A stretch of 64,000 nt of DNA, taken from assembly GCA_026770705.1 (NCBI GenBank), contig JANJGN010000121.1, positions 620,001 through 684,000 of the forward strand, read 5' to 3'. The position numbers were made by a program, and so were the translations under genes. Shown here one piece after another: positions 1,627 through 61,073 of this stretch (the stretch's first letter is position 1; each line of letters opens with the position of its first letter). The DNA is from Isurus oxyrinchus. Its lineage: Eukaryota. Under the pieces are notes generated by a model, which ran no database searches, was not told the DNA's origin, and was given only the letters and a program-made list of their open reading frames with translations.

Positions 1627-1908
1627 ATGCTCCACAGAATCTCACATTTACTTCTCTTGAAATGATTAATGCTTCATCGATCAATATAATTGAGGGGAAT
1701 TCTGCAGTGATAATCTGCTCTGTCGAGAGCTTCCCAGCTTCTAACCTGACGTGGCGACATCTTAATGTCCCAATGAACAGAACAAGTTGCAACAATGAGC
1801 TGTGGTTGGTGATTCCTCACGTTACATCCAGGGACACTGGAGACTATCAGTGTGTGGCAGAGAATGAACATGGAGCAGTGGAGGGATTCATCACCATCAC
1901 TGTGGAAT
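1627..1908 (+). CDS. Gene A (Siglec/CD22-like inhibitory receptor): C2-set Ig exon, copy 1
   Basis: ttcttag acceptor, gtgagt donor, 282 nt, phase 1-1; xAPQNLTF...VIICSVESFPASNLTW...DTGDYQCVAENEHG (B-strand Cys, C-strand Trp, DxGxYxC). Confidence 0.9.
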
Positions 1909-2047
1909 GTGAGTGTACACAGACTTCAACATCTCTCACACACACACTCACACATGCAAAAACACTCATGTGTAGACACAAACATGCACGCTTACACACA
2001 AACATACGTTCAAACACAAACACAGAAACACACACAAACTCAACTCA

Positions 2048-2191
2048 NNNNNNNNNNNNNNNNNNNNNNNNNNNNNNNNNNNNNNNNNNNNNNNNNNNNN
2101 NNNNNNNNNNNNNNNNNNNNNNNNNNNNNNNNNNNNNNNNNNNNNNNNNNNNNNNNNNNNNNNNNNNNNNNNNNNNNNNNNNNNNNNNNNN
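2048..2191. other. Assembly gap (others at 2966-3097, 11123-11364, 12291-12427)
   Basis: N runs flanked by CA/TG low-complexity sequence. Confidence 1.
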
Positions 2192-2676
2192 CAGACACGC
2201 GCATACACACAAATACAAACTCACGTGCAGAAGTACACACACAAGTGTGAGCTCCCTCTCCTCTCTCAGTTCTGCACTGGAGTCATGGTATCAGCTCCCA
2301 TTCTGTGCTGAAGGAAGGTAAACTCCAGATCAGCAAGACCCTGAATTGGATGAGCAACCTCCTGAACAGAGAAATGTAGATTTAGCCCTCAGTGCTCCAT
2401 CGATCAAATACAATTCATTGCCTATCAAGCCCTTGGGGACATCTTGAGAGTGTTAAAGGATGTTTCTTTCATTCTAGAGGGTTAGCAACTCTACTGGTGG
2501 GAGGAAGCAACTGCAGTGTGACAGTTTACATAGGAAGTGTCCATTATAAATATGACAGTAATTTTTCATGAGGGAAGGTACCTGGAAAAGCATTCCAACA
2601 TCAGATACAGAGAGATGATGCATGGAGTCTTGCTGTGCACTATGCTTGCTCACATTAAAATCTTTATTTCTTTTAG

Positions 2677-2957
2677 ACGCACCCAGAATCTCTCAATTAA
2701 TTCTCTTGATATGATTAACGCTTCATCGATCAATATAATTGAGGGGAATTCTGCAGTGATAATCTGCTCTGTCGAGAGCTTCCCAGCTTCTAACCTGACG
2801 TGGCGACATCTTAATGTCCCAATGAACAGAACAAGTTCCAACAATGAGCTGTGGTTGGTGTTTCCTCACGTTACATCCAGGGACACTGGAGACTATCAGT
2901 GTGTGGCAGAGAATGAACATGGAGCAGTGGAGGGGTTCATAACCATCACTGTGGAAC
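2677..2957 (+). CDS. Gene A: C2-set Ig exon, copy 2 (1-nt deletion near 5' end; frameshifted as assembled)
   Basis: ttttag acceptor, gtgagt donor, near-identical to copy 1 but 281 nt (acgcacccag vs atgctccacag). Confidence 0.8.
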
Positions 2958-3775
2958 GTGAGTTANNNNNNNNNNNNNNNNNNNNNNNNNNNNNNNNNNN
3001 NNNNNNNNNNNNNNNNNNNNNNNNNNNNNNNNNNNNNNNNNNNNNNNNNNNNNNNNNNNNNNNNNNNNNNNNNNNNNNNNNNNNNNNNNNNNNNNNNCAC
3101 ACATGCATAATTATCCACACACAGTCATACACATACAAGCACATACACAGGAAAATACACACCCATCTCAAACACACACACACATTCATGCCCACACATA
3201 GACACACACATGCACATACTCTCACTCATGGACAGACCTAGACACACAGACACATGCGCATGCGCACACACAGACACATGTGTGCATACACACACAAACA
3301 CACTCACATGTGCAGAAACACAAACACACAGATACACACACATGAGTTCCCTCTCCTCTCTCAGTGCCGCACTGGAGTCTTGGTATCAGCTCCGATTCTG
3401 TGTTGAAGGAAGGTAAACTCCAGATCAACAAGACCCTGAATTGGATGAGCAACCCTCCTGAACAGAGAATTGTAGATTTACCCCTCAGTGCTCCATCAAT
3501 CAAATACAATTCATTGCCTGTCCAGCCCTTTGCGAAATCCTGAGGATGTGAAAGCAAGCTTCTTTCATTCTAGATGGACAACACCTCTACTGGTGGGAGA
3601 ATGCAACTGCAGTGTGACAGTTTACATAGGCAGTGTCCATTAAAAATGTGGCATAAGACGTTATCCTGAGGGAAGTTACCTGGAAATGCATTCAGACATC
3701 AGATACAGAGAGATGATGCATGGAGTCTTGCTGTGCAATAGGTTTGCTCACATTAAACACTTGATTTGTTTTTAG

Positions 3776-4057
3776 ATGCACAACAGGATCTCTCATTTAC
3801 TTCGCTTAATATGATTTACGCTTCATCAATCAATATAATTGAGGGGAATTCTGCAGTGATAATCTGCTCTGTCGAGAGCTTCCCAGCTTCTAACCTGACG
3901 TGGCGACATCTTAATGTCCCAATGAACAGAACAAGTTCCAACAATGAGCTGTGGTTGGTGATTCCTCACGTTACATCCAGGGACACTGGAGACTATCAGT
4001 GTGTGGCAGAGAATGAACATGGAGCAGTGGAGGGATTCATAACCATCACTGTGGAAT
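3776..4057 (+). CDS. Gene A: C2-set Ig exon, copy 3 (membrane-proximal)
   Basis: tttttag acceptor, gtgagt donor, 282 nt, phase 1-1, same Ig motifs. Confidence 0.9.
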
Positions 4058-4867
4058 GTGAGTGTGGAGATACATTTATTTGTTTGTTGTCTCCGTGGTC
4101 TCCATGGAGCCATTGGGATCGTGTTGTTTTTAATCCAGTTTTCTTCAATCCTCGCTCAGTCCACGTTATCCACACACCCAATTTTTCCTCTCCCTTTCTG
4201 TTTTTGCTCTCAGTTTCTCCTTCAATGGTTGTGAGGACAAGGCTGTCAGGTCTTCGTTTCCAATCTCCGTACTTGAAGACCTTTCTCTCTCTAACTGTCC
4301 TGAACAACCCTTTTATTTGCTGAACTTCTCATTCTTTAATTGATAAATATTATATATAAATGTTACATGTTGAAATGCAACACTTGTATTCATAAATTGC
4401 TTAGAAATTACTAAACATTCAACAGCCAATGCAGCATTATCGAAGTGAGCTCACTGTTGTAATGTAGGAAACACAGGTACTGATTTGTGCACAGCAAGAT
4501 CCCGCAAACCACCGTGTGATAATGACCTGATAGTCGATTATTTCAGTGAGGTTGGTTGTTACATGTGTAGAGACTACATACCCTTTAGGGAGGGAAGCAT
4601 GTCTCGATGTGGATGTGACTCCAGTCTCAGACACCAACATTGTTAACTCACACCTGCCCTCTGAACTGGTCTCCCAGTTTGGGACAAACCAGTGGTTCAG
4701 GAGGAAGACCCCCCACCACCTTCTCAAGGGGAAACTAGGGATGGACAATAAATGTCAGCATTGCCCGAGAATGAGTATTTAAACACTGAGTGAGTGTATC
4801 GCTTCTTGAGATACATCGGAGCATCATTGTAAACCTGTAGTGCAGTAATTAATGGCTGTTTTTACAG

Positions 4868-4964
4868 GTAGAGACTCCAGTAAATGGACAGTAGGATTGT
4901 TCACGGCTGGGATCATGTTGAGTGTTTTCCTGGCTGGAATCTTCATCTTCATCTGTGTGAGAAA
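4868..4964 (+). CDS. Gene A: transmembrane exon
   Basis: ttttacag/gtaagt; phase 1-2; (C)RDSSKWTVGLFTAGIMLSVFLAGIFIFICVR(K): uncharged hydrophobic helix followed by basic residues. Not in the ORF track. Confidence 0.88.
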
Positions 4965-5843
4965 GTAAGTCTGAAGATTTAACTTGATTTTAATATAAAC
5001 ATTTGCTTCAATGTTCTTTCCTTAAGTCGGTGATTGTTTCCCTTGGGATCAGCACCAGGTCCCTCTCTGTAAGTGATCCCTGTGTCCAGTCTGATCCGGA
5101 GAGAACCTTTCATTGTCCTGTATCCAGGTAAACAATCACGAGACCCAGAGATTCCTCACTCTGCACGATTACTCCGGGATAAATATTTGCTTCAATGTTC
5201 TTTCCTTAAGTCGGTGATTGTTTCCCTTGTGTTAAGCGCTAGATGCCTCTCCGTAACTGGTCTCTTTTGTCCCTTACGATCCAGACAGTGTTTTTCATTG
5301 CCCATTATCCAGATGAATAATAATCAGTTGCTGTGATCTGGAAGGTGCTGCCTGAAAGGGCGCTGGAAGCAGATTTAATAGGATCTTTCAAAAGGGGAAT
5401 TGGATAAATACTTGAAGGGGGAACATTTGAAGGGCTATGGGGGGAAGAGCAGGGGTGGAGGGGGGGGTCAAAGATATGGCGTGTCATTATAATGATATTA
5501 TACCTTAGGCTTATTTATTGTACAAGAAACAAAGCACCAATCGCTCACAGGGATTGGGTGAGAATGTTAATGATTTGTTTATCAAGACTCGGCACGAGAA
5601 CAGTTATACATATGGAGAAAGATTGAAGGCATCAGAGCTGTGAGTGTGTGTTCTGCTCAAAGCAAAAGTCAAACTAAGATTGGATCACATGACACACTTC
5701 CATTATAGTGATGTCACGCTGATATCCCTTATTGGAACTAGAGACAGTCCAGTCGTTGGTGTAAGGTTACACTGGGCTCTGTGTCTGTGCTGCACTGACT
5801 CTCTGCTATATGATAACCACAGTGTGATATTGTGTTATTGCAG

Positions 5844-5925
5844 GAGAAAGACAGCGATGGAGGAGAGAGTTTCAGGGACCAGTGACATTGTATTGACCCC
5901 CAGTCCACTCTCTGTGAAGTACCAG
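5844..5925 (+). CDS. Gene A: cytoplasmic exon 1
   Basis: ttattgcag/gtacag; phase 2-0 matches both neighbours; (K)RKTAMEERVSGTSDIVLTPSPLSVKYQ. Confidence 0.8.
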
Positions 5926-6139
5926 GTACAGGAGCTGTTTACACTCACTCCAAAGCTTCTATCTCAGTGTGTAGACAACACATGTCCCAGATTCCCAGCC
6001 AGGTTACCCACAGATATCTACCTGTGGAGTCAGATATGGCTCAGTAGGTAGCATTGTCTCTCGCTCCCTCCCCCTCTTCCCTCCATCACTCGCTCTTTGA
6101 CCAGAAACCTGAACGCAATAATGACAAGGCACCTGATGT

Positions 6140-6520
6140 CAGTAGTGAGGGAGTGCTGCACTGTCCTAGGGTCTGTGCTGAGGGAGTGCTGGAGTATCAG
6201 AAGGTCAGTACTGAGGGAGTGTTGCACTGTCAGAGGGTCTGTACTGAGGGAGAGCTAGACAGTCAGAGGGTCAGTACTGAGGGAGTGCTGCGCTGTCATA
6301 GGGTCAGTACTGAGGGAGTGCTGGACTGTCGGACGGTCAGTACTGAGGGAGTGCTGCACTGTCGGAGGGTCAGTACTGAGGGAGTGCTGCACTGTCGGAT
6401 GGTCAGTACTGAGGACAGTACTGAGTGAGTGCTGCACTGTCAAAGAGTCCATTTGCAAGGGGTGCTGCCCTCTTGAAGGGGCAGTTCCGAGGGAGTGCTG
6501 CACTGTCAGCAGAGAGCACT
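6140..6520 (+). repeat. 33-bp minisatellite
   Basis: Same unit. Confidence 0.9.
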
Positions 6521-6973
6521 GAGAGAACATTGCAGTGTTCGAGGTGCCTCTTTCAGAATAGTTGTATAATGCTGACCATGTTTACCATCTTATCTGGTCC
6601 CATGGCCACATTTCCAACACTGTAGCAGTGTCGCCCTTCAATAAAATTCCTTCATTGGCGTGAGGTTCTTTGTGTGTCTGTGTTTGTGAATAATGGGGCA
6701 CAAATCTCATGATTGGGATGGTAACATAGGACTTCAAGACTCAGGTCTGCGATAGCGAGAGAGATTACATGATAAATAGAGAGAGAAAGCAAGAGAGAGA
6801 GAGAGAAAGAGAGACAGAGAAAGAGATTGAAAAAAAGGAGACAGAGAAAGAGAGTGAAAAAGAGGGTTAAACCCATTGAGACATGACTGACAGTAACGAG
6901 GCTGCAGAATAACTTAACCCTATCAGTGCCAGTAAATGATGTGAGGATGTCTTCTGTTTCTATTTCTCTGTAG

Positions 6974-7222
6974 GGTAAACAGAACGTGCTGATTACTGAG
7001 CCCCGGAACACAACCAGAGACACAACTAGCGAGGGGGAGACCCCAGCTCCCCGGGGTCTCTCTGAAGGTCCAGTGGGAGGCGATGTTGGACATGGGAACC
7101 CCGACAAACCCGACGAGCTTTTCTATGCCAACATCAACTTTTCAAAGCTGCCCGGCGGTGACAGGACTGTGCACAGGAGCGAGGACACGGAATACGCACA
7201 GATCAGGTTCCAGAAAAACTGA
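6974..7222 (+). CDS. Gene A: terminal cytoplasmic exon with ITIM-like LFYANI and ITSM-like TEYAQI
   Basis: tttctctgtag acceptor, phase 0; GKQNVLITEP...DELFYANINFSKL...EDTEYAQIRFQKN-stop; same two-tyrosine layout as CD33-related Siglec tails. Confidence 0.9.
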   Translation, partial: GKQNVLITEPRNTTRDTTSEGETPAPRGLSEGPVGGDVGHGNPDKPDELFYANINFSKLPGGDRTVHRSEDTEYAQIRFQKN

Positions 7223-7415
7223 GTGTGAAACAGGGAGCGGGGCTGTGGGGTGTGTGCAGCCAACATGGCCAAATAGTAATGAACACAAATATGATGTTGC
7301 TCAACTTTTTTTTATTGGTTTTAACTGAGCTTTCTGAATGCTGCACCTTTTTCCATGCTGTAAAAGATTGTGAGAAGCTTATGAATTATGTATAATTTAA
7401 CATTTGTTAATACAA

Positions 7416-9460
7416 GGTGAGGTGAGAGTGACTGCCTTTGACATCAAGTCTGCATTTGACCGAGTGTGGCATCTAGGATCCCGAGTAAAACTGGAGTCAA
7501 TGGGAATCAGGGGTGGTGCGAAAGTATAATCATTTGCTTAATATTTTCCTGGTTTGTTGTAAACTAGGTTTCTGGGTGTGAGTGTAGATGGGTCTGTCTG
7601 TGTGGTTCTAATTACATCTGGAGACAGGTACACTGCAAGTTTGAGATTATCAAAAGAAGCTAGATGTAGAAATGTACTTGAAATGCTAATGAGAACACAT
7701 GGAGGCTGTGTTAGCATGTGAGGTGTGAAGGGGCTGTTTAGATTTCAAAGGGATGTTGGTCTGTTTAGGACAAGCCCAATAAGCAAAGCTAAGGAGTTTT
7801 TTTTTAATTTTACCCAAACTTCATTGACAATATTGGCAACATGAAAGTTTATATTATGGGAAAGGTACAGTTCCAAAGAATTTACACATCAAAGAGAGAG
7901 AAACATGTATAAAGGAGAATGAAAGGCTATGTTGGGGGCCATGTAAGATCTAACAGGAGTGTGTGAAACAGGCTTGAAGAAGCCTCCAGGCATTTGTGCA
8001 TAAGTCTGTTATGTTCAGTAAATAAAGTTGGAGAAATCCATTTAGAATTCCAGTGTCAAGTGTGTGCTGTGTTAACTCGCTGGGTTTGTTTTTAATCTAA
8101 AATCTTATTTTGGACTGTTGCCTTAAACAGGCTCTGTAACTGGGAGTCAGGTTAATTAGGAATTTGAGAATATAATTTAGCTGTAACTAACCGTGGTATT
8201 ATGTCTGTACTTGAAATCTTTTATTTTGTTAATAAATATCTTAATTGAATTTTTAAAATCTCTAAAGGTTGTGGTCAACTCATTACTCCTGAATTCAGTG
8301 CACGCTTCTTGTAATAAATACAAATTGCAAAACTATTGTGATAGCGTGACCAATTTTCCCTTGTGGATTTGGAGCACCAAGCACACATCATCTGCCATGT
8401 CATGTCACAGGGAAAACTCTCCACTCGTTGGATTCATACCAAGTACAAAGGAAGGTGGTTGTGGTTGTTGGAGGTCAGTCATCTCAGTTCCAGGACATCA
8501 CTGCAGGAGTTGCTCAGCGTAGTGTCCTAGGCCCAACCATCTTCAGCTGCTTCATCAATGACATTCATTCTATCAGATGGTCAGAATTATGGAAGGTCGC
8601 TGATGATTGCACAACGTTCAACATCATTCATGACTCATCAGATGCTGAAGCAGTCCATGTCCAAATGCAGCAAGACCTGGACAATATCCAGGCTTGGCCT
8701 GACAAGTGGCAAGTAACATTCATGCCACACAAGTGCCAGGCAATGACCATTTCCAACCAGAGAGAATATATCCATCTCCCCTTAATGTCCAATAGCATCA
8801 CCATTGCTGAATCCCACACTATCAACACTCTGGGGGTTACCAATGACTAGAAACTGAACTGTACTAGCCATATAAACACTGTGACTATAAGAGCAGGCCA
8901 GAGCCTGGGAATCCTGTGGTGAGTAACTCACCTCCTGACTCCCCAAAGCCTGTCCACCAACCTCAAGGCACAGGTCACAAGTGATGGAATACTCTCCACT
9001 TTCCTAGATGAGTGCAGCTCCAACAACACTCAAGAAGCTCGACACCGTCCAGGACAAAGCAGCCCCGCTTGATTTGCGCCCCGTCCACAAACATTCTCTC
9101 CCTCTACAACTGACGCACAGTGTGTGTACCATCTACAAGATGCAACGCAGGGAGTCACCAAGCCTCCTTAGACAGCACCTTCCAAACACATGATCACTAC
9201 CATCTCGAAGGACAAGGGCAGCAGACACATGGGAACACCACCACCTGGAAGTTCCCCTCCAAGTCACTCACCATCCTGACTTGGAAATATATCACCGTTC
9301 CTTCACTGTCGCTGGGTCAGAATCCTGCAACTCCCTCCCAAACAGTTCTGTGGGTGTACATACACCACAGGGACTGCAGCAGCTCAAGAAGACAGCTCAC
9401 CCCCATATTCTCAAGGACAATTAGGGATGGGCAATAAATTCTGGCCTAGCCAGTGTCAGT
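7416..9460 (+). mobile_element. CR1-group LINE fragment interrupted by an LTR-like insert
   Basis: RT segments (AFDRVW-like at ~7450; SVLGPTIFSCFIND, ADD, QQDLDNIQAW at 8428-8850); reading continues across 7514-8409; same family at 29010-30090. Confidence 0.8.
7514..8409 (+). mobile_element. Solo LTR-like element
   Basis: TG...CA ends inside a G run of the LINE, internal AATAAA; related copy at ~41640-42055. Confidence 0.6.
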
Positions 9461-9889
9461 GAATGAATACAAAAAAGAAGCAATTAAAATGTCCTGACAT
9501 TTCTGTACATTTTTATCAAATTAAATACGTACTCTAGTGAATAATTTCATTCTCCAAGGCACCACTTCCTGTTGTCACATGCCCTTCTGATTATTTAAAT
9601 TCCTGTGTCATTGGTAATGGAACATTCCCATGTAAACATGTCACACTGTAATTACAGCCTCCTACCAGTGGTGGTGCTTTAGTGTCCTAGTTTTGCTTCT
9701 CAGAGACTGGAGGAGCTGTATACATTGTGTTTACAATATTAGTAACACTCAGGAGTGACCAGGGGGATTCTTTTGGCCAAGTTTACGATGTTGCTAACAT
9801 ACAATGGCCCCGTGGGATTTTTCCTACTGCGTTTACAAGGTTGAATTGAAGAGATTTTTGAAGTGTCTGGCACAGTTTTATTAAGGTCC

Positions 9890-10425
9890 CCTCACATCCA
9901 ATCTGGAGTCACTGGGTTCAGTTCTGGGTCCAGCAGCTTAGGAAGGATATATTGTCCTTGGAGGGGGTACTGTGCAGAGTCACCAGGATGATCCCGGGTC
10001 TGAAAGGGTTAAATCCCGAGGACAGGTTGCACAGACCAGGCTTGTGGTCCCTCGAGTCTCGAAGATTAAGGGGTGATCTAATCGAGGGGTTTAAGTTGAT
10101 TAAAGGCTTTGTTACGGGCAATAGAGAGAAACTATTTCCTCTGATGGGGTTGAGGTGAGGAGGGTTCAGAACAAGGGGGCAGAACATTAAAATTGGAGCC
10201 AGGCCGTTCAGGGGGTGATGTCAGGAAGCACTTCTTCACACAAAGCGGGGGTGGAAATCTGGAACTCTCTCCCCCAGAAAAAGCTGTCGAGACTGGGAGG
10301 GGTCAATTGTAAATTTCAAAACTGAGATTGGGAGATGTTTGTTGGGTCGGGGGGTTAAGGGTCACGGAACCGAGGCGGGTGGATGGGGTTAAGATACAGA
10401 TCGGACGTGATCCAATCAAATGTTA
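9890..10425 (+). mobile_element. CR1 LINE 3' fragment
   Basis: RVTRMIPGLKGL...SLESRRLRGDLIE; CR1 3' UTR-like tail. Confidence 0.85.
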
Positions 10426-12689
10426 GGACGGTGAGTCTCAGGGAGGCTGGCCCAACCCCAGACGCAGCCGTCTCTGTGACCTGCTTCAACCCTGTTGGTC
10501 AGCAATGACAACATGAGTTGATGTTAGCCTGATATGTAGTGCATGGAGGGATATTACTCTCCAGGGTGTGTGTGCATCACAGTGCTCATTCACATGTGTT
10601 CCATGTGCACCTACATCAGCTGTGTAGACATACAAGCCTCAATGCTGCATCCGCGGAATGTGCCATGTCTCACACCTTAGCTGCAGCACGACCCTTCCCT
10701 TGGAGCTCTGTGTGCTCGAGACATATTTTGTTATTTTTTCCTGCCGTCTCTGTGTCCCCCGACCCGGGCGTGAAAATCCAGCCTTAACTTCCACTTTCTA
10801 GTGTCTGAGACAAGAGGCAATGAGTGAGTGGGCTGACGGTCAGGATTAATGCTGTTAATCTGTGTTTGAGGGGCTGTGAATTCTCGGGGGACTAGTTACT
10901 CTCTGAGCTGCAGCTTCCAAATCCTTATTTGATGCCGTGCATGTGGGGTTGGAAGATTTTTTTTAAAACCACAGGCAGTTCACAGAAACCCACAGGAAAC
11001 CCACAGAGAGACAGTCACTGAGAAACACACTCACTCCTTGTGGTTTCACCTTTTAACCACATCCTGTCTGTGTGGCTTAAATGTTAAACACAGCGGCCAG
11101 ACTCAAGGAGGTTTCACTCTGTNNNNNNNNNNNNNNNNNNNNNNNNNNNNNNNNNNNNNNNNNNNNNNNNNNNNNNNNNNNNNNNNNNNNNNNNNNNNNN
11201 NNNNNNNNNNNNNNNNNNNNNNNNNNNNNNNNNNNNNNNNNNNNNNNNNNNNNNNNNNNNNNNNNNNNNNNNNNNNNNNNNNNNNNNNNNNNNNNNNNNN
11301 NNNNNNNNNNNNNNNNNNNNNNNNNNNNNNNNNNNNNNNNNNNNNNNNNNNNNNNNNNNNNNNNCAGACAGACACAAACACACACATTCACACACACACA
11401 CATTCACTCACACACACACATTCACTCACACACTCACTCACACACACAAACACACACACAAAGACAATATCCCAATGACAACAAACTGCGATTAAGAGCT
11501 TCCTACAACTTAACTAAGAGACCAAAGACATATTGAACTGTCTAAAAGCGACCTGTTTTTCAAAGAAATACAAGATTGTACACAGATCAAAAATGGCTGA
11601 CACAAGTCACCTAATTGCTGATACTGTGAAGTTGATCACTTCTCTGGAAAGGTTCAAATGAATTGCACTGCAGACCTGTTGCATGGAAGTTCACGCCTGG
11701 GGTGTGTCAGGGTCCATTTCAAATAGAGACACTCTTAAAAGGAAGGCATTAAAATGTAAAGTGCTGGACTTTGATCAGCTGTAGTTCAATCAAAACATTG
11801 GGAACTGCTCACCAAGCGGATAATCATCAACCATTCAAAACCCCCTGTGGAGGATACAATACCCCCGTCTCCTGTTGATTTATATCTTGAAATGCATCAA
11901 AGGATTCAGAGATGCAAAGATAAAAAAATGGGAATACTTGGTCTATAACAATGAATGCAAAACATGCTGATCGAATTGACTTCAGGGATATACAGACAGG
12001 AGTTTAACAAATGGTTCTGCCAAGCAGATATAAGAGAAAGGAGGGGAAAAAGAAATATGGCAGTCTTCCACAAACACTGCTGGAAAAGAGCAGAAATTCT
12101 CTCTCTCTCTCTCTCTCTTTCTGAAGCTAACAGCGCATCTTCAACAAAGTGCAAATCTGAATCAAATCACCACCAGGATGCCACAGGAAACCAATTAACC
12201 TTGAACAGCTGCAAACGTCAACAATCTACACCTCAAAGACAAGCAATTGTATTAATCATATATTCTTTTAAATTTTTATTGGACTCTAACNNNNNNNNNN
12301 NNNNNNNNNNNNNNNNNNNNNNNNNNNNNNNNNNNNNNNNNNNNNNNNNNNNNNNNNNNNNNNNNNNNNNNNNNNNNNNNNNNNNNNNNNNNNNNNNNNN
12401 NNNNNNNNNNNNNNNNNNNNNNNNNNNAGTGAGTGTGTGTCTGTCTATGTACCCTTGTGAGTGAGTGTGTGTGTGTGTGTACATGTGTGCGTGTGGATTG
12501 TTGCATCTTGATTATTAACGTTATTTAAAAATAGTGATCACACAAGCCTGGTTTCTAAGGAAATGAAACTGCAAACAATTTACAGTAAAGTGAAACGTAC
12601 AGGAATAATCTATTTATTTTGAGCTGATGATATATAATTATACATGAGGCATGTTGCTAATTTCAAATGTCATCTGAAATATGGCAGGT

Positions 12690-12890
12690 CTGACAGAGCA
12701 GCATTCCCTCAGTGCCCACCCTCTGACAGTGCAGCACTCCCTCAGCACTGACCCTTTGAGAGTGCAGCACTCCTTCAGTACCGACCCTCCGACAGTGCAG
12801 CACTCCCTCAGTACTTACCCTCTGACAGTGCAGCACGCCCTCAGTACTGATCCTCTGACAGTGCAGCACTCCCTCACCACTCCCTCACTG
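12690..12890 (-). repeat. 33-bp minisatellite within an inverted copy of 285-920
   Basis: Reverse-complement units with matching unique flanks. Confidence 0.85.
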
Positions 12891-12949
12891 GGGAGAATCT
12901 ACCTGGGTTTTGAGCTGAAATCATGAGCAGGTCTTAAAACATTCTGTAT

Positions 12950-15959: not shown

Positions 15960-16261
15960 GAGTGACGTCAGAGGGATGGTCTATGAAGGCGCTGCCTCGG
16001 AGGGCCATCAGCAGCTCTTGTGTGGTTATTCCGTGTAGCTTTGACTTTCCTTCCCACTCTTACACAGCACTGCATGGAGCTTGGTATAAATATTGGTATA
16101 GATGGAAATATACCATCACATACACCAAAGATCCCAATTATGGGGTGGCCACATTCGTGGGACGTGCTAAAATAATCGGCGACTTGGAAGGGAAGAATTG
16201 TTTGGTGAGGATTGACAGTCTCAGAGCTGAAGACAGTGACGTGTATTACACCCAATTCTAA
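15960..16261 (+). pseudogene. Gene D: MAG/sialoadhesin-like Siglec V-set exon truncated in the F strand
   Basis: cctttcag acceptor, phase 1; W...SCVVIPCSFDFP...HGAWY...FVGRAKIIGDLEGKNCLVRIDSLRAEDSDVYY, then TQF-stop from Gypsy sequence; no donor and no downstream Ig exons found on +. Confidence 0.85.
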
Positions 16262-17340: not shown

Positions 17341-17617
17341 AGTGTATCTCGGAATGAGTTTGAAGAATTGAAGCATCCTCACAGGCTGCAAGTGTCCCTC
17401 AGGTCAGAGTTGGTTCCACTGGAAAATCCTGAAGAGAAAGAAAGCGAATTCTGTGCCGCTCTGAGCAAACTGAAGAAACAGTTGGCAGGGAAGACCCAAC
17501 CATGTCCAATGTTCCAGGAGGAAGGCAAGAGATACAAGGAAGAGACTGAAGAGCTGAAGATTCAGCTGAATGAAACCAAAGAGGCAGTTACAGTATCACA
17601 ACAAGTTTACAGTGCAG

Positions 17618-37828: not shown

Positions 37829-37879
37829 CTGGGGAGAGAAATCTCAATATTTAACTCTGGATGGTTTGTGGATCCACTA

Positions 37880-41055: not shown

Positions 41056-41433
41056 CAGAAACCTGAAGCTGGGTTACAGGGTAATAGTTATGGCTCGGAC
41101 CATTGTCAAATTTTATCGTGAAAAAATAATATCCTGCATCTTCCCGTCTGATGTTGTTTATAATCAGGGAACAGTCACCATCTTTCAGGTCTCCAGACAG
41201 CCGGGTCCGATGGCGGAACTGTGGCAACTCGTGACTGTGACCCTTGGAGTGAAAGGCTATAGACCATTTAGACCATTTGTTCCGTATGTACCTTCTCATT
41301 TTCCAGATTCCGACATGTGGTTTCTTTACCAAATCTGATGGATAACTGTAATGACATGGAATCTGTACACACAAACCTTCCTGCGCTGTCACCTCTCGTG
41401 GAGTGTCACCTTTCCACTCTTGTGACAATCCAA
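41056..41433 (-). CDS. Gene B: Siglec V-set exon (distal), essential Arg replaced by Thr
   Basis: ctctccccag/gtaagt, 378 nt, open; VTAQEGLCVQIPC...DCSL...DAGYYFFTIK. Confidence 0.9.
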
Positions 41434-46714: not shown

Positions 46715-46754
46715 CTTGGAGAAGTGACAGGAGGAAGTAGGATTTCCCGATCAT
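46715..46754 (-). CDS. Gene B: signal peptide exon
   Basis: MIGKSYFLLSLLQ with donor caag/gtaata, phase 1; joins V exon to give ...LLQVGLSQEW; acceptor tttctctttcag just upstream (exon start 46796). Confidence 0.8.
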
Positions 46755-47169: not shown

Positions 47170-47350
47170 GGTGGAAGTGAATTCTAATCGTTCCGTTACT
47201 TACCCAGGACCTGTCCGACTGCTCGCCTGGGGAGGAACTGCCCACACGCTCTGCTTGGGCTGAATGACCTCTTCCTGTGCTGCTCCCTCTGTGTATTTAA
47301 TTAGAAAGGGTGGATGTGTCACTGTGAGACAAAATGAGGAAGTGGGTAAC
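47170..47350 (-). promoter_or_regulatory. Candidate 5' UTR exon / promoter of gene B
   Basis: Minus-strand gtaagt donor at 47203-47198; PU.1/ETS-like aaaatgaggaagtg at 47331-47344. Confidence 0.35.
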
Positions 47351-47574
47351 CAGTGAGAAGATCGAGGATGTTTTGTGCTCTCAGCAAAACGCTTACCATG
47401 TGATGATCTGTCAGCTCATATTTGGGCAGCTGTAGTCATGAAGCTTCTCCATTGGCTCCGTGGGATTAGACTCCTGCCCCTCACCTCGGAGGCTGAAACT
47501 CAGGCGATAAGAGTTCCCAATACAGGTCTCTGGCCTTATGATACATTTCAACGATCCCTGTTATCATTACAGAG

Positions 47575-50095: not shown

Positions 50096-50789
50096 CACTG
50101 TTCTAAGTGCATTCTAGGCACTGCCCAAGGTTCCGCCTGATGTCCGTGTAACAACAACATCATGTACACGTCGAGAATATTTCCCACTGTTCGGTGCAGC
50201 AAGACAGCTTTGGAATGGCACCACCACTGGCAGGAGTGTGAAACTACAATGTGACATGTTTACATGGGAAATTTCTATTATAAAGATGGGCACAGGAATT
50301 CGTATGATAGAACAAATGTGACAACATGAAGTAATGTCTTTGAGCCAAAAATTTGGCTTCAAAATAAGAATTTTAATCTATAAATATCTACAGAACAGGC
50401 TGAGCATTTTAATCACTTGTGTTAATCAATGTAATTTTATTCATAACCCAAATGCTTCTTACAATCTATCGCAGCATGAAAAAGGTGCAGCATTCAGAAA
50501 GCACATTCCAATCAGAGAACAGAGTTTAGCAACGTCACATTTCTGTTCATTCCTATTCGACCATGTTGGCTGCACACAGCCAGACAATGCCGTGGTTATG
50601 ATGTGTCCACACAGCAGGACTGGGGAGCACCAGGTATAAGGAAAAGTTTCAGCTTGCTGAGGAGAAGAAGGAGAATCTCTCGTTCCAGGTTTCTCTCCGT
50701 ACATTAAGAAGCAGGCATGCCGATGTTTCATTGCACTCTGTCTGCTGTTGGGAGTCCGCTTGGAAATTGCTGTTTGTGCTGATGGAAAG

Positions 50790-51400
50790 AATAAGCTTTT
50801 CATAAATCGAGGCATTGAGTACAAACACAGGGAGGTTATGCTGAACATTTATAAAGCTCTGGTTAGGTCACAACTAGAGTATTGTGTCCAGTTCTGGTCT
50901 CCCCACTTTGGGAAGGAAGTGAGGGTCCTTGAGAGGGTGGGGAGGAGATTGAGCAGAATGGGTCCAGGGATCAGGGATTTTAGCTACAAGGTTGGGTTGG
51001 AGAAGCTGGGGTTGTTCTCCTTGGAGCAAAGGAGATTGAGGGGGGATCTGATCGAGGTGTACAAGATGATGATGGGTTTAGATAAGGCAGACAAAGAGAT
51101 GCTGTTGCCATTAGCTGATGGTACAAGGACTGGGGGACACAGATTGAAGGATTTGGACAGGGGGTGATGTGAGAAGGAACTTTTTTACACAGCGAGTGGT
51201 AATGAGCTGGAACTCGCTGCCTACGAGGATGGTGGAAGTGGAGACGATGAACGATTTCAAAAGGAAATTGGATGGACACATGAGGGGAAATAAACTCACA
51301 GGGATACGGGGATAGAGCGGGGGAAATGGGACTGAGTGGATTGCTCTACAGAGAGGCAGCATGGACTCAATGGGCTGAATGGGCTCCTACTGTGCTGGAA
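50790..51400 (+). mobile_element. CR1 fragment (paralog of 33895-34500)
   Basis: Near-identical sequence and junctions. Confidence 0.88.
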
Positions 51401-51518
51401 TACCTCTCTGATATGAAGGTGATTCTAACCAGGACACTGACCAGTTTCATTACAACTTAACCCAACATCACACGTTATTTGTCCGCACTGACTGACCAGA
51501 TTGTTGCTGTACAAAGCT

Positions 51519-51658
51519 TCAAACAGTCTGTCGACTTCCTTTCACTGTTTGTCTCTCCCAGACACAGACTCCAGTGATAGTGATAACCACAGCCACAAGG
51601 AATATCACAGCTTGTATTCCCAGGATCAGGATCACGTGCAGAATCTCTCCTCCACTGT
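51519..51658 (-). CDS. Gene C: TM + short tail exon, Arg changed to Gln
   Basis: Same acceptor as gene B; xSGGEILHVILILGIQAVIFLVAVVITITGVCVWERQTVKGSRQTV-stop; CAA at 51614-51612. Confidence 0.85.
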
Positions 51659-52779: not shown

Positions 52780-52932
52780 GTTCCACAGTGATGGTTATGA
52801 ACCCCTCCACTGCTCCATGTTCATTCTCTGCCACACACTGATAGTCTCCAGTGTCCATGGATGTAACATGAGGAATCACCAACCACAGCTCATTGTTGGA
52901 ACTTGTTCTGTTCATTGGGACATTGAGATGTC
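52780..52932 (-). pseudogene. Gene C: 3' half of a gene A-type C2 exon (pseudo-exon)
   Basis: Same breakpoint and in-frame TGA as in gene B; HLNVPMNRTSS...DTGDYQC...ITVE, gtgagt donor. Confidence 0.85.
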
Positions 52933-53253: not shown

Positions 53254-53550
53254 CTTGCACAGTTAGTACGAGGGTCCGCTCCGATGAAACAGATGGATAT
53301 CTCACTCTGCAGCTGAGAGTGTGTCTGTGGTGTTTGAGTGATGGGATCAGGGTCAGAACAGAAGTATAGGTCAGAGTGACACCATGCTGAGTTACAGTGT
53401 TTGAGACTGATCCAGGTACGTCAGTGGGAGTGTCCCAGGTTAAGACAGGTGCTGCTGTTCCATTGCACGTTGTGTTGAAGGTGCAGCTTACATCCACACG
53501 CTTTCCTGCAATAATTTCAGCAGGGAATATCGTGGGTTTATCTGTGAAAT
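53254..53550 (-). CDS. Gene C: Siglec domain-2-type C2 exon (proximal copy)
   Basis: tctgttag/gtaatt, 297 nt, open, near-identical to 36350-36646. Confidence 0.9.
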
Positions 53551-54865: not shown

Positions 54866-55230
54866 CAGAAACATGAAGCTGGGTTACAGGATAGTAGTTG
54901 TATCTTTTCCTGCCGTCAAATTCTATCCTGAAAAAATAAGGTCCTGCATCTTCCCGTCTGATGTTGTTTATAATCAGGGAACAGTCGCCATCTTTCAGGT
55001 CTCCAGACAGCCGGGTCCGATGGTGGAACTGTGGTAACTCGTGACTGTGATCCTTGGAGTGAAAGGCAATGGGAGAACCCAATTTGTGTGTTTCTTTATT
55101 ACACCAGATTCCATCTCGTGGTTTGTTTTCCAACTCTACTGGATAACTGTAACGAAATGGAATCTGTACACAGATTCCTGCGCTGTCACCTCTCGTGGAG
55201 TGTCACCTTTCCACTCTTGTGACAGTCCAG
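54866..55230 (-). pseudogene. Gene C: frameshifted V-set exon
   Basis: Splice sites intact but 365 nt (net -4 after VTAQE) giving an early TAG; B-strand Cys also TGT>TTT; YFFRIE retained downstream. Confidence 0.87.
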
Positions 55231-55404
55231 CTGGGGAGAGAAAACTCAATATTTATCCCTGGATCCTCATTGTTTAATGAATCTCTTTGGATCTTCTTTG
55301 TCTAAGGAATCTTTTTGGATCCTCATTGTCTAAGGGATTATTTCTGATCCAAACCCCATATTGTTGTATTGTTGATTCCGATGCAGCATTGTAGACTGAC
55401 TCGT

Positions 55405-58150
55405 CCCCCAAAAAACTGTGTATCTCAGCCTTGAATATAATTAATGACCCAGCCTCTGCAGCTCTCTGCGGTATAGAATTCCACACATTCACTACCCTCT
55501 GAGAGAAGAAACTCCTCATCTCTGTCTTAAATGGGTGACCCCTTACTCTGAGATTATGCCCTCTGGTCCTAGACTCTCCCACAAGGGGAAACAACCTCTC
55601 AGCATCTACCCTGTCAAGCACCCTAAGAATCTTATATGTTTCAATAAGGTCAGCTCTCATTCTCCTAAACTCCAATGAGTACAGGCCCATCCTACTCAAC
55701 CTCTCCTCATATGAAAATCCCTCCATTACTGGGATCAACCTAGTGAACCTTCTCTGGACTGCCTCCAATGCCAGTACATCTTTCCTTAGATAAGGGAACC
55801 AAAACTGTTCACAGTATTCTAGGTGTGGTCTAACTAGTGCCTTGTATAGTTTTAGCAAGGCTTCCCTATTTTTATACTCCATTCCCTTTGAAATAAAGGC
55901 CAACATTCCACCTGCCTTCCCTATTAACTGTTGAACTTGTATGTTATCTTTCTGATGACCCCCAAATTCCTCTATGCTTCAGCTTTCCAATGTCTTTCTC
56001 CATTGAAATAATATTCAGCTCCTCTATACATCCTGCCACAGTGCAGCAGCTCACATTTTCCCACATTATATTCCATCTGCCAAGTTGATGCCCACTCACT
56101 GAACCTGTCTATGTCCCTCTGTAGACTCTTCGTGTCACCCTCACCGCTTGCCTTCCCATCTATTTTTGTGTCATCCACAAACTTGGCGAAAGTACATTAA
56201 TTTCCCTCATCCAAGTCATTAATATATATTGTAAATAATTGTGGCCCCAGCACTGATCCCTGTGGCAATCCACTGGTTGCCATCCTGAAAATGCCCCCTT
56301 ATCCCAACTCTCTGACTTCTATTAGTTAGCCGATCCTCTATCCATGCTAATATACTGCCCTCATCACCATGGGCTCTTATCTTATTAAGGAGCCTTATAT
56401 GTGGTAATTTACTGAATGCCTTTTGGAAATCCAAATATATTACATCTACTGGTTCCCCTTTATCTATCCTGTTTGTTACCTCCTCAAAGAATTCTAATAA
56501 ATTTGTCATGCATGATTTCCCCTTCATGAAGCCTGTGTGTGATTAAATTATGCATTTCTAAATAGTCTGCTATTACATTCTTTATAATGGACTCTAACAT
56601 GTTCCCAATGACAGATGTTAAACTCACTGGCCTATAGTTACCTGTTTGTTGTCTCCCTCCCTTTTTGAATATGGGTGTTACTTTGGCAGTTTTCCAATCC
56701 TCTGGGACTTTCCCAGAATCTAAGGATTCTTGGAAGATTAAAACCAGTACATCCACTATCTCTGCATCTACTTCCTTTAATATCCTAAGATGCAACCTAT
56801 CAGGTCCAGGTGACTTATCAGCCTTGAGACCCATTAGTTTCGCTAGCGTTATTCTCTAGTGATAGTTACTGTATTTATTTCCTCTCCCCACCCCCCTTTT
56901 GCCCCTTGATTATTTAGTATTTTTGGAATGATATTAGTGTGTTCTACCGTGAAGACTGATGCAAAGTATTTCTTCAACTCCTCTGTCATTTCCTGGCTCC
57001 TCATTATTATTTCCCTAGCCTAGTTCTCTAAGGGGCCCATGTTCACTTTGGTCTCTCTCTCCCTTTTTATATATTTAAAGAAGCTTTTATTGTCCTTTTT
57101 TATATCAATTGCTAGTTTACCTAGTTTTCTCCCTTTTTCTTTATTTTTTGGTCATCTTCTGTTGGTTTTTAAATCTCTCTCAATCCTCTGGCTTACCACT
57201 AATCTTTGTCATGCTGCATGTTTTTTCATTCAATTTGACACACACCTTAACTTCTTTGGGTAACCCAGGTTGGTTTATTCTCTTCCTACAATCCTTCTTT
57301 CTCACTGGGATATATCGTTGTTGTGAGTCATGAGCTATTTTCTTAAAGATCTGCTATTGTTCATCCACCATCTTTTCTGCTAAACCCCTTTCCCAGTCCA
57401 CTCCAGACAACCCTGTCCTTATGCCTTTGTAATTACACTTATTTAAGTCCAGCACAGTTGTTTCCGACCCAGGTTTCTCAGTCTCAGAGGGAATGCTAAA
57501 TTGTACCAGGTTATGGTCACTGTTTTCCAGGGGATCATTTATTCTGAGATCATGTATTAAACCTGCCTCATTACACATTACCAGATCCAAAATAGCCTGA
57601 TCCCTGGTTAGATACACGACATATTATTCCAGGAAACTGTCTTGAATACACTCTATGAATTCTTGCTCATGGCTACCTCTGCCAATTGGGTTTTCCCAAT
57701 CTACTTGAAGATTAATGTACTGCCTTTTTTACATGCCCTCATTATCTCATGATTTATTCTCTGTCCTACAGCCGAGCTACAGTCATGGGGCTGATAGACC
57801 ACTCCCACCAGTTCCTTGTTCTCCTTGTTATTCATTACCTCGAGCCATATGGATTCTATACCCTCCGATCCAAGATCATTTCCTGCTTTCGTACTTATTC
57901 CATCTCCTATTAACAAAGCTACCCCACCACCTTTCCTTCCTGCCTGTCTTTTTGAAAAGTCACATACCCCTGAATATTTATTTCAAAGCTTTGATCTCCT
58001 TGTAACCATGTCTCCATAATGGCTATAAGATCAAACCCATTAACCTCTATTTGTGCCTTTAATTCATTTATGTTGTTCCAAATACTATGTGCATTTAAGC
58101 CAAGAGCCATTAATTTTGTCTTTTTATCATTTTCCTCCCTCTGACACTAT
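55405..58150 (-). mobile_element. Near full-length, decayed CR1 ORF2 (endonuclease + RT)
   Basis: LNAHSIWN..LIAIMETWL, ILDLVMCN, SDHN, KSPGPD, NYRPVSLTS, YLDFQKAF, DDTK, LEAVQRRFTRLIP. Confidence 0.92.
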
Positions 58151-58309
58151 TTGCTGATGTATTTTAATGTTTGGACGCTGTGTACCCACCTGTCACACAC
58201 TGGGTATCATCACCAAAACAGCTATCCTGCAATGCTGACAAATCCTTTTGCTTTGTAAGCCTACACATACCCTCTCCAGAACACTCTCCCCATCTATTTA
58301 GTATAAAGG

Positions 58310-59340
58310 CAATACTGAGGGAGAGCAGCACTGTGTCAAAGGGTCATTACTGAGGGACTGTTGCACAGTTGGAAGCTCTGGAACGAGGGACTGCAGCATT
58401 ATCTGAGTGTCAGTCGGCAGGGAGGTATTCAATGTTGGATTGTAAGGTCTCAGGGAGCGCTGCAGAGTTGGAGGTTCAGTAGTGAAGGAGTGCTGCACTG
58501 TCAGAGGGTCAGTACTGAGGGAGTGCTACACTGTCAGAGGGTCAGTACTGAGGGAGTGCTGCACTGTTGGAGGGTCAGTACTGTGGGAGTGCTGCAGTGA
58601 CGGAGGATCAGTACGGAGAGATTTCTAAACTGTTGGAGGATCAGTACTGAGGGAGTGCTGCACTGTCAGAGGGTCATTACTGAGGGAGTGCTGCACTGTC
58701 AGAGGGACAGTACTGAGGGAGTGCTGCACTGTCAGAGGCTCAGTACTGAGAGAGTGTTGCACTATCAGAGGGACAGGACTGAGGGAGTGCTGCACTGTCA
58801 GAGGGACAGGACTGAGGGAGTGCTGCACTGTTAGAGGGTCAGTACTGAGGGAGTTCTGCACTGTCAGAGGGTCAGAACTGAGGGAGTGCTGCCCTGTCAG
58901 AGTGTCAATACTGAGGGAGTGCTATACTGTCAGAGTGTCAGTACTGAGGGAGTGCTGCACTGTCAGAGGGTCAGTACTGAGGGAGTGCTGTACTGTCAGA
59001 GGCTCAGTACTGAGGGAGTGCTGCACTGTCGGAGGGTCAGTACTGAGGGAGTGCTGCCCTGTCAGTGGGTGAGTACTGAGGGAGTGCTGCACTGTCAGAG
59101 GGTCAGTACTGAGGGAGTGCTGCCCTGTCAGAGGGTCAGTACTGAGTGAGTGCTGCACTGTCAGGGGGTGAGTACTGAGGGAGTGCTGCACTGTCAGAGG
59201 GTCAGTACTGAGGGAGTGCTGCTCTGTCAGAGGGTCAGTACAGAGGGAGTGCCACACTGTCAGAGGGTCAGTACTGAGGGAGTGCTGCACTGTCAGAGGG
59301 TCAGTACTGAGTGAGTGCTGCACTGTCAGGGCGTGAGTAC
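58310..59340 (+). repeat. 33-bp minisatellite
   Basis: Roughly 30 tandem units. Confidence 0.9.
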
Positions 59341-59551
59341 ATTGCGATTCCTGCTCTGCTCTATCGGTCAATTGGCTGGAAATAAAAGCCGTTGTGTTAC
59401 TGTTCAGAAACTATTATTAATTGTGTTCTGGTCACTATTTTCCCTGAAAAACAGATTCTCTGATTGTCATCAGAATACCTTTCTATGGAATCCTGCTGTG
59501 CATTATCTACACTGTTCCAGCTAACGTAGAATGAAGGGTGTCCATACTTAC

Positions 59552-59848
59552 ATTGCACAGTTAGTACGAGGGTCCGCTCCGATGAAACAGATGGATATCT
59601 CACTCTGCAGCTGAGAGTGTGTCCGTGGTGTTTGAGTGATGGGATCAGGGTCAGAACAGAAGTATAGGTCAGAGTGACACCATGCTGAGTTACAGTGTTT
59701 GAGACTGATCCAGGTACGTCAGTGGGAGTGTCCCAGGTTAAGACAGGTGCTGCTGTTCCATTGCACGTTGTGTTGAAGGTGCAGCTTACATCCACAGGCT
59801 TTCCTGCAATAATTTCAGCAGGGAATATCGTGGGTTTATCTGTGAAAT
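59552..59848 (-). CDS. Gene C: Siglec domain-2-type C2 exon (distal copy)
   Basis: tctgttag/gtaagt, 297 nt, open; KPV instead of KRV. Confidence 0.9.
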
Positions 59849-60707
59849 CTAACAGACAGAGAATGGATCCTTTTAGAGAAATATAACGTGAAGCATCAGT
59901 TCAAATAGAAACCACAGTCCCACAAGAGAAAGCACTTTTACAAGGATGATATCAGAACTGAGAGGTTACAATGATCAGGAAAGATTTTCTTGCTCTTTGG
60001 CAGTAGTGTTTCTGTCTCTCAGCTTAATACACGTTCACTCCGAGACATGTGAATTGAGAACACTGGATGAGAGAAGAGGCTCAGACCAGAGATTGGAGTT
60101 AAAAGCAGAATACTGCGGATGCTGGAAATCTGAAACAAAAACAAAAATTGCTGGAAAGACTCAGCAGGTCTGACAGTATCAGTGGAGAGGAAGACAGGGT
60201 TAACGTTTTGAGTCCGTATGTCTCTTCATCAGACCAGAGGTTTGAGTTCACTGGCTTCTCATTTCCTCAGTGATCTGGGTGATTTATCACCTTGTGGTTT
60301 GTTGGATCTTGCTGTGCACAAACTGCCTGCTGTGTTTTACATCTGTGACTACAATTCAGGAATAATGTCATTGGCTGTGAAGGGATTTGGATCCTCCTGA
60401 GGTGGTAAATTGCGCTGCAGAAATGCACATCTTTCTTTTATCGATACGTCAGACTTTTAAACAGGACAGGAGAGATTGATGGGAGTGGATAACCTGATAA
60501 TACAGTTAATGCTTTTCATCATTGATATTAAAGTGAGTATTAGAGGTTGCTTTAGAACTGAACTGGAAGCTATCACCAGGTTATTGAGAATCAGACAGTG
60601 TGTTATAATAAGCTGTGTTTTGTGTTAATATGTAAACGTCACAGTTTGTGTTATTTCCTATTGAGAGTTGAAAGTGAATTGTTGAGTAATTATAACAAAG
60701 CACTTAC

Positions 60708-61073
60708 CAGAAACGTGAAGCTGGGTTACAGGATAGTAGCTGTATTTATTTCTGCTGTCAAATTCTATTCTGAAAAAATAAGGTCCTGCATCTTCCCGTC
60801 TGATGTTGTTTATAATCAGGGAACAGTCACCATCTTTCAGGTCTCCAGACAGCCGGGTCCGATGGTGGAACCGTGGTAACTCGTGACTGTGATCCTTGGA
60901 GTGAAAGGTTATAGACGATGTTCTCCATTCCTCATTATTAAACCAGATTCCAACTCGTGGTTGCTTTTCCAAATGTGATGGATAACTGTAATGACATGGA
61001 ATCTGTGTACACGAACCTTCCTGCGCTGTCACCTGTTGTGGAGTGTCACCTTTCCACTCTTGTGACAGTCCAA
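60708..61073 (-). CDS. Gene C: Siglec V-set exon, essential Arg present
   Basis: ctctccacag/gtaagt, 366 nt, open; VTAQEGSCTQIPC...DAGPYFFRIEFDSRNKYSYY. Leader expected just beyond 64000 by paralogy with gene B. Confidence 0.92.

Follow-up and report, generated by a model that had tools for sequence, protein, structure and literature searches.

Siglec-like genes in the window

We analysed a window of 64,000 nucleotides (nt) from contig JANJGN010000121.1 (positions 620,001 to 684,000), in which exons of three Siglec-like receptor genes were found, here called A, B and C. Gene A lies on the plus strand and encodes tandem C2 domains, an uncharged transmembrane (TM) segment and a long tail, in which an immunoreceptor tyrosine-based inhibitory motif (ITIM) is followed by a second motif resembling an ITIM or an immunoreceptor tyrosine-based switch motif (ITSM). 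Gene B, on the minus strand, encodes a leader, two V domains, a domain 2 (D2) and a TM segment with an Arg, and ends in a spliced 3' untranslated region (UTR). Gene C, also on the minus strand, is of the B type but appears to be decaying. The exons are collected in Table 1. All similarity searches were run with single exons, by reference, or with proteins from databases. The DNA is of vertebrate type (GC 46%, CpG observed/expected 0.29) and rich in a 33-bp satellite, microsatellites and fragments of long interspersed nuclear elements (LINEs) and long terminal repeat (LTR) elements. The closest relatives of its immunoglobulin (Ig) exons were predicted shark and ray proteins, the nearest being those of Carcharodon carcharias, with 92–97% amino acid identity over V2, D2 and TM. 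The source organism is thus likely, from its sequence, a relative of the lamnid sharks, in agreement with a previous inspection of the letters (the sequence-only reading), which had called it a probable shark; the close relatives were all selachian models.

Table 1. Exons, shared blocks and RNA joints of genes A, B and C
Feature	Position	Strand	Remarks
A, C2 exon a	1627–1908	+	282 nt, phase 1-1; acceptor TTAG, donor GTGAGT; Pfam Ig_3/I-set, E 1e-11
A, C2 exon b	2677–2957	+	281 nt; 1-nt deletion near the 5' end
A, C2 exon c	3776–4057	+	282 nt, phase 1-1
A, stalk and uncharged TM exon	4868–4964	+	starts in phase 1, ends in phase 2; splice sites
A, first cytoplasmic exon	5844–5925	+	82 nt, phase 2 to 0; acceptor TTGCAG, donor GTACAG
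A, last coding exon	6974–7222	+	LFYANI (ITIM) 7118–7135; TEYAQI (ITSM/ITIM-like) 7187–7204; stop 7220–7222
A, 3' UTR block common to B and C	7248–7420	+	79% identical to 33684–33516; also matches 50581–50416
B, leader exon	46715–46754	-	13 codons + 1 nt, phase-1 donor GTAATA; sole such leader in the window
B, V1 exon	41056–41433	-	378 nt, intact, phase 1-1, AG/GT sites; long C-C' loop insertion
B, V2 exon	37460–37828	-	369 nt, intact, phase 1-1, AG/GT sites; essential Arg (YFFR) and three conserved Cys
B, D2 (C2-set_2) exon	36350–36646	-	297 nt; both ends set by RNA joints
B, dead 3' half of C2 exon	35874–36026	-	donor kept, no acceptor; skipped in RNA
B, TM exon	34595–34756	-	intramembrane Arg (CGA, 34712–34710); stop 34619–34617; donor at 34594
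B, terminal 3' UTR exon	33492–33881	-	AATAAA starts at 33544, 33516 and 33480; joint 34595/33881
C, distal V exon	60708–61073	-	366 nt, intact, Arg kept, AG/GT; 90% identical to Carcharodon P0164
C, distal D2 exon	59552–59848	-	intact
C, proximal V exon	54866–55230	-	365 nt, AG/GT sites, 4-nt deletion (frameshift); second structural Cys to Phe
C, proximal D2 exon	53254–53550	-	intact
C, dead half C2 exon	52780–52932	-	matches the C2 exons of A
C, TM exon	51497–51658	-	Gln (CAA, 51613) for Arg, Thr for Ala; both CG>CA
RNA joint, V2 to D2	37460/36646	-	GT..AG; runs X1 and X5
RNA joint, D2 to TM, half C2 exon skipped	36350/34756	-	GT..AG; runs X1, X8 and X5 (three studies)
RNA joint, 713-nt intron in the 3' UTR	34595/33881	-	GT..AG; run X8

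The V exons matched the Pfam families V-set (E 1e-11) and Ig_CD22 (E 5e-9), and domain 2 matched PF08205 (C2-set_2). When V2 of gene B was compared with the sequences of the PDB, the 18 best matches were all Siglecs (Siglec-5, -8, -7, MAG, CD33, Siglec-10, sialoadhesin and Siglec-15), with the Arg of YFFR and the three Cys of V2 aligned to those of Siglec-5. Domain 2 matched domain 2 of CD33, MAG, Siglec-10 and Siglec-8, and shows the Cys pattern C-x6-C plus a third Cys. For V2, an AlphaFold2 model based on an alignment of 31 sequences reached a mean predicted local distance difference test score of 89.7, and in a Foldseek comparison with the PDB its first 46 matches were all Siglec V domains (template modelling scores of 0.79–0.88). 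The essential Arg of strand F (YxFR motif), which in Siglecs contacts the carboxylate of sialic acid, is kept in 26 of the 31 aligned family members; V2 of gene B and the two V exons of gene C have it, and V1 of gene B does not. The three V Cys are conserved in 30–31 of the 31 sequences, as a sequence pattern and not as demonstrated disulfides. Taken together, Pfam, the PDB sequence search and the fold comparison support V domains of the Siglec type, as the sequence-only reading had proposed, and the shark V domains may bind sialic acid. The V2 scores were about equal for Siglec-5/7/8/CD33 and for MAG (E 1e-15 to 1e-13), and worse for Siglec-1, Siglec-15 and CD22; V gives no subgroup assignment, and it is the tail of gene A alone that looks clearly CD33-like.

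The first C2 exon of gene A was 81–83% identical to the C2 domains of shark Siglec models. Its three C2 units form a tandem array with a period of 1.05–1.1 kb, the exons being about 96% identical and the introns only 87–90%, which indicates distinct copies rather than a stutter of the assembly. When spliced at its canonical AG, C2b is out of frame, while the other exons of gene A join in frame; a sequencing error is a possible cause of its 1-nt deletion, as an assembly gap begins 9 nt downstream of it. The TM exon was 63–69% identical to the TM region of ITIM-bearing shark models. Since this exon ends in a phase that cannot be joined directly to the last exon, the 82-nt exon between them is what restores the frame, and it was 85% identical to the matching part of models from Cetorhinus and Carcharodon. 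The last exon was 87% identical to the tail of the Cetorhinus (basking shark) model P0003, and its two motif Tyr lie 23 positions apart. Because the bare ITIM pattern is common, with 242 matches in the six frames of the window, the ITIM call rests on the exon context and not on the motif. The same type of tail pair (LHYASL and TEYSEI) is found in a mammalian protein among the distant matches, the Tupaia CD33 model P0093, suggesting a tail of the CD33-related type. The uncharged TM and the long tail with both motifs, as originally described for this gene, are therefore borne out.

Eight shark Siglec models begin with exactly the 13 leader residues of gene B, whose leader exon lies 5.3 kb upstream of V1. 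A leader within the 220 nt that are conserved upstream of two V exons was also considered and ruled out, no signal peptide being found there. V1 has Thr (AGG>ACG) at the position of the essential Arg. Two V domains in this order, the first with the V1-type insertion, also occur in Cetorhinus P0003 and Carcharodon P0172/P0173, whose V1 retains the Arg; the latter two share the whole V1-V2-D2-TM(Arg) architecture with gene B. The TM helix has a single Arg in its outer third and is followed by a tail of 12 residues without Tyr. The earlier picture of gene B thus held for V, domain 2, the TM Arg and the short Tyr-less tail, but it had missed the leader and V1 and had counted about 13 residues in the tail. 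For gene C, the leader must lie beyond the window.

Between the 3' end of gene C and the leader of gene B, at 47204–47290 (minus strand), there is a lone cytoplasmic exon with AG/GT sites. It shares 71% identity with the first exon of another type of tail, known from Carcharodon P0018 and Chiloscyllium P0007 (YxxM/YxN-type tails), and no further exons of this tail were found in the window.

Spliced RNA and conservation of the gene B membrane exon

To the region 33250–38750 we aligned, on the minus strand, RNA-like contigs of four runs from four studies (runs labelled 'RNA?'); as contigs, they carry no information on expression level in their depth. Three joints were obtained, all with GT..AG borders (Table 1). 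The sequence-only reading had named, as the result that would count against it, a TM exon (34617–34756) never spliced to the Ig exons of gene B; the joint from D2 to TM was present in three runs, so that this objection did not apply. One 850-nt contig of run X8 spans D2, the TM exon and the last exon to 33492, just past the AATAAA at 33516, and because it has 0 mismatches in the TM exon, this transcript carries the Arg. The last exon junction follows the stop codon by 22 nt. As the usual rule for nonsense-mediated decay requires 50–55 nt, the intron in the 3' UTR should not trigger decay. Another contig of run X8 joins a C2 exon to a second C2 exon (153 + 129 = 282 nt), indicating that tandem C2 exons are spliced in series in some member of the family.

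The peptide of the gene B TM exon was found at 80–96% identity in eight predicted proteins, three of Carcharodon (91–96%), two of Scyliorhinus torazame, two of S. canicula and one of Chiloscyllium punctatum. The Arg is invariant in all eight models, from four species of three galeomorph orders, while the neighbouring positions vary; these orders have been separate for roughly 200 million years. In these proteins the TM-Arg module is joined to differing ectodomains, namely V-D2, V-V-D2, V-V-C2-C2 and V-D2-C2x4, and the Scyliorhinus and Chiloscyllium forms keep full C2 domains, of which gene B in the window has just the dead half exon. In Carcharodon, P0165 (TM-Arg) and the models with an ITIM, P0013, P0153 and P0018, are each reported on a contig of one and the same length, 1,818,738 bp, which fits a linked pair in that species too. 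When region 226–270 of P0165 was used to look for the TM-Arg module in other families of receptors, three Carcharodon proteins were the only matches, in a word index whose limits mean that a blank says little.

The shark models resembling the genes of the window include, among Gnomon predictions, Carcharodon XP_041037179 (ITIM) and P0165, P0172 and P0173 (TM-Arg), S. torazame XP_072325011, the S. canicula 'Siglec-14 X2' P0166 and Chiloscyllium XP_072409577. They show the same exon types as the window (leader, V1/V2, D2, TM with Arg, and ITIM tails) at 80–97% amino acid identity, and are automatic predictions without a published description. In rays, the Pristis pectinata model P0009 has a Siglec-type V-D2-C2 ectodomain with a canonical ITAM (immunoreceptor tyrosine-based activation motif; YQEL-x7-YSEL) in the receptor's own tail, and the Hypanus sabinus model P0002 has four V domains in a row, so that several kinds of signalling and domain layout occur within the family in that group.

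Relations among the genes and the paired-receptor reading

Genes A and B stand tail to tail, with 26 kb between the stop of A (7222) and the 3' end of B (about 33490). The 3' 153–160 nt of the C2 exons of gene A, with about 30 nt of intron, recur in inverted orientation in B (36026–35874) and C (52932–52780) at 95–97% identity. Upstream of the half exon in B and C nothing homologous was found and no usable acceptor, and, as reasoned from the sequence, its internal AGs would shift the frame. The identity of 97% suggests that the relic stems from a recent exchange with A or from a recent deletion. The 3' UTR block of A aligned to the last exon of B with a score of 182, compared with 24 ± 3 (maximum 35) for shuffled sequences. 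The sharing of a C2 segment and a 3' UTR block between A and B/C, in opposite orientations, had been claimed from the letters and was reproduced here. The terminal exon of B was also considered as a decayed ITIM exon, and this was ruled out: only the UTR block is homologous, and the coding part of A scored 48, within the shuffle range. Between A and B no similarity of TM or coding tail was found; as the coding part of the A tail has no counterpart in B, descent of B from an ITIM gene by loss of the tail cannot be shown.

Genes B and C are 87–100% identical in a mosaic fashion, 91% overall. A tract of 300 nt, mostly intron, is 100% identical between B (35023–34724) and C (51925–51626), and both of its flanks are 87–90% identical. 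Because the tract is mostly intron, it points to recent gene conversion between B and C and not to selection on an exon.

Based on these observations, we read the window as part of a shark cluster of CD33-type Siglec-like genes, with an inhibitory gene A, an activating-type gene B and a decaying gene C, and give this reading a probability of roughly 0.7. Of the paired system originally proposed, the ITIM-bearing A and the linked TM-Arg gene B have stood, with a spliced mRNA and an Arg kept across three shark orders, while the role of C as a decoy has not. Gene A would be the 3' half of an inhibitory receptor whose tail, judging from its motifs and from mammalian Siglecs, would recruit SHP-type phosphatases. 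Gene B would encode a receptor of the form leader-V1-V2-D2-TM(Arg) with a 12-residue tail that has no signalling motif, from an mRNA that skips the dead half C2 exon and removes a short 3' UTR intron. Receptors that couple to ITAM adaptors are classically marked by one basic residue in the TM and a very short tail. The most likely partner for the Arg of B would be an ITAM adaptor that bears an Asp, FcR-gamma or a protein like DAP12. An Arg in the outer third of the helix, as in B, is found more typically with FcR-gamma than with DAP12, which we take only as a lead; Arg-bearing macaque KIR pair with FcR-gamma (PMC8102735). If B binds the same or similar ligands as receptors of the A type, the two would give opposite signals. 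Duplication, gene conversion (100% tracts between B and C that include intron) and exon loss probably keep reshaping the locus.

Several points weigh against this reading. C2b of gene A is out of frame in the present assembly, and V1 of gene B is without its essential Arg. The leader-V1 and V1-V2 joins of B are inferred from homologous gene models, not from reads. The 850-nt contig of run X8 has letters of the C/D type at 36417, 36501 and 36516 (probably also 36627), and at 33636 and 33651, together with B-type letters in the TM exon, at 33851 and at 36422. At the D2 sites it is B that deviates among three copies of D2, so that the transcript looks like a sequence without the private changes of B; it may come from an allele, a paralogue or the orthologue of a sister species rather than from this very copy of B. 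Adaptor coupling, phosphatase recruitment and glycan binding are predicted properties. Finally, the V and domain-2 exons of gene A lie outside the window, which makes a similarity between the ligand-binding domains of A and B in this genome conjectural.

The position of the missing V exon of A also leaves room for the view that A and B, as members of a large and rapidly evolving family, merely lie side by side without forming a pair that shares ligands, the V domains of A then differing from those of B and the shared segments recording common descent; the lack of similarity in TM and coding tail agrees with this. The ITIM-tailed models of related sharks argue otherwise. V2 and D2 of gene B were 88% and 97% identical, respectively, to those of the Carcharodon ITIM model P0153, V2 was 87% identical to that of Cetorhinus P0003, and the latter, an ITIM model, has the same V1-type loop insertion. 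The dead half exon, at 97% identity to the C2 exons of A, likewise suggests a recent exchange between A and B. We therefore regard two unconnected neighbours as unlikely.

It is also conceivable that B is not activating, its TM Arg serving assembly, retention or another partner, or that B is a non-signalling sink for ligand. A charged TM residue alone does not name its partner, and V1 in the window has lost the ligand-binding Arg. Against this stand the combination of a basic TM residue with a very short tail, an established adaptor signature exemplified by macaque KIR (PMC8102735), and the invariance of the Arg across three shark orders amid varying neighbours, and we consider a non-activating B quite improbable compared with the activating-type receptor that we prefer.

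Gene C is best read as a decaying duplicate of a B-type gene, because a frameshift and the loss of a structural Cys mark its proximal V exon, the changes in its TM exon run in the CpG direction, and the Arg is found in every orthologue. The TM exons of B and C show two differences in 300 nt, both at CpG sites. The sequence-only reading had described C as having the same TM without the charge, which is correct (Gln), and as a decoy, which we reject as the best explanation in view of the broken V exon and the CpG decay. As a working decoy, C would by exon skipping yield V-D2(-D2)-TM(Gln), a protein that binds ligand and neither couples nor inhibits. All its Ig exons are of phase 1-1, so that skipping the frameshifted V exon would keep the frame; the distal V and both D2 exons are intact; and the TM exon with 400 nt around it is otherwise identical to that of B. 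That near-identity, however, takes in intron and is thus a matter of gene conversion, not of selection. Both TM differences are in the direction of methyl-CpG decay at a site whose Arg is invariant in eight orthologous models, and no transcript with Gln was seen among the RNA-contig rows shown for 33250–38750. A functional decoy accordingly seems a poor candidate, and a decaying duplicate the better description of gene C.

The window carries four N gaps. Gap 2048–2191 lies in an intron and begins 140 nt past the C2a donor; gap 2966–3097, also intronic, opens 3 nt past the intact GTGAGT donor of C2b (2958–2963); gaps 11123–11364 and 12291–12427 are intergenic. None of the four is crossed by an exon or reading frame. 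With gaps inside the tandem unit, both the count of C2 exons and the frame of C2b are provisional. That the C2 copy number, the 1-nt deletion of C2b or the orientation of the A segment is an artefact of assembly, as the four gaps (two inside the 1.07-kb tandem unit) and a 419-nt inverted repeat (94% identical) abutting gap 12291–12427 might suggest, is very unlikely, since the separate contigs 1–2047, 2192–2965 and 3098–11122 all carry plus-strand C2 exons, the C2 units differ in their introns as distinct copies do, and an RNA contig joins C2 to C2 in tandem.

The inverted repeat (498–916 and 12456–12874) brackets all exons of gene A, its right copy being the one next to the gap. Recombination between its arms would flip the C2-TM-ITIM module of A onto the strand of B, downstream of B, and the repeat may be a source of structural polymorphism or of assembly risk. 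Blocks of the 33-bp satellite, which is open on both strands, were located at 200–700, 6050–6570, 12680–12930, 25640–25930, 32840–33200, 47550–50110 and 58300–59360. They sit at the ends of the cluster genes and within introns, with blocks directly after the 3' ends of B and C and another directly after the distal D2 exon of C, and may mark breakpoints of duplication or deletion. Fragments of LINE reverse transcriptase were found at 8411–8850, 29657–30090, 30881–31400, 33851–34414, 50748–51167 and 55274–57617; the fragment at 33851–34414 lies within the 3' UTR intron of B, with a copy in C, and splicing takes out most of the insert. At 15960–16246 (plus strand) there is a divergent Siglec-like V exon with a good acceptor and CxxxxC and NC(L)V motifs, with weak matches to Pfam V-set and Ig_CD22 and 29% identity to shark models. 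A gag-like LTR retroelement (16212–18300) interrupts the exon just ahead of the F-strand Arg motif, and the exon is probably dead.

Comparison with known paired receptors

As in the human pairs SIGLEC5/SIGLEC14 and SIGLEC11/SIGLEC16, a gene with an ITIM and TEY tail is closely linked to one that combines a basic TM residue with a short tail, the copies show signs of gene conversion, and some copies in the cluster are decayed or null. The arrangement differs from the human pairs in belonging to a shark lineage, in the two V domains of B, and in that, within the window, a dead half exon and a UTR block are all that the inhibitory and activating genes share. SIGLEC14 and SIGLEC16 are of recent origin, which makes an evolution of the shark pair independent of the mammalian pairs plausible. 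Unlike the mammalian activating partners, which are recent, the shark TM-Arg exon is an old module present in at least three shark orders.

The layout of B further recalls human SIGLEC12 (Siglec-XII), which has two tandem N-terminal V-set domains and has lost the essential Arg from one of them. Where SIGLEC12 bears an ITIM, B combines a TM Arg with a short tail, and among the sharks compared the V1 Arg is lost only in gene B of the window, being kept in V1 of Carcharodon and Cetorhinus. More broadly, the KIR, LILR, PILR, CEACAM1/3 and Xenopus CEACAM pairs (PMC5112662) likewise combine similar ectodomains with either an ITIM or a charged-TM/ITAM route and have been shaped by duplication and conversion; in contrast to these families, the ectodomain here is a Siglec-type V domain with the sialic-acid Arg.

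Fish genomes have been described as lacking CD33-related Siglecs, with Siglec-1, CD22, MAG and Siglec-15 being regular there, in a work that never mentions sharks or other cartilaginous fish (PMC7226832). A 2025 review of sialoglycan-binding proteins treats paired Siglecs without sharks (PMC13358205), and the whale shark genome paper merely lists Siglecs among expanded Ig families (PMC8455134). Our full-text literature search found no description of shark Siglec pairs. NCBI automatic annotation already names such genes in other sharks Siglec-12, -13 or -14 or CD33-like, the twin-V models being named 'Siglec-12'.

We tentatively suggest, at less than even odds, that paired CD33-type Siglecs with ITIM and TEY tails were already present in the galeomorph shark ancestor, perhaps even in the ancestor of jawed vertebrates, and that a dedicated activating TM-Arg cassette, conserved over a long time, could be combined with V-D2, V-V-D2 or V-D2-C2n ectodomains. 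If this is true, CD33-related Siglecs would be no invention of tetrapods or mammals, fish would not be generally without them, and paired signalling by Siglecs would be of ancient origin, not a recent response to the pathogens of mammals. A shark cluster in which ITIM and TEY tails stand beside a conserved TM-Arg partner would show that cartilaginous fish have the logic of paired receptors, and its twin-V layout with one binding Arg lost parallels human Siglec-12. It would also provide a second and very distant example of paired Siglecs, bearing on the origin of such pairs, on pathogens as the force behind them, and on the early adaptor of an Arg-bearing Siglec.

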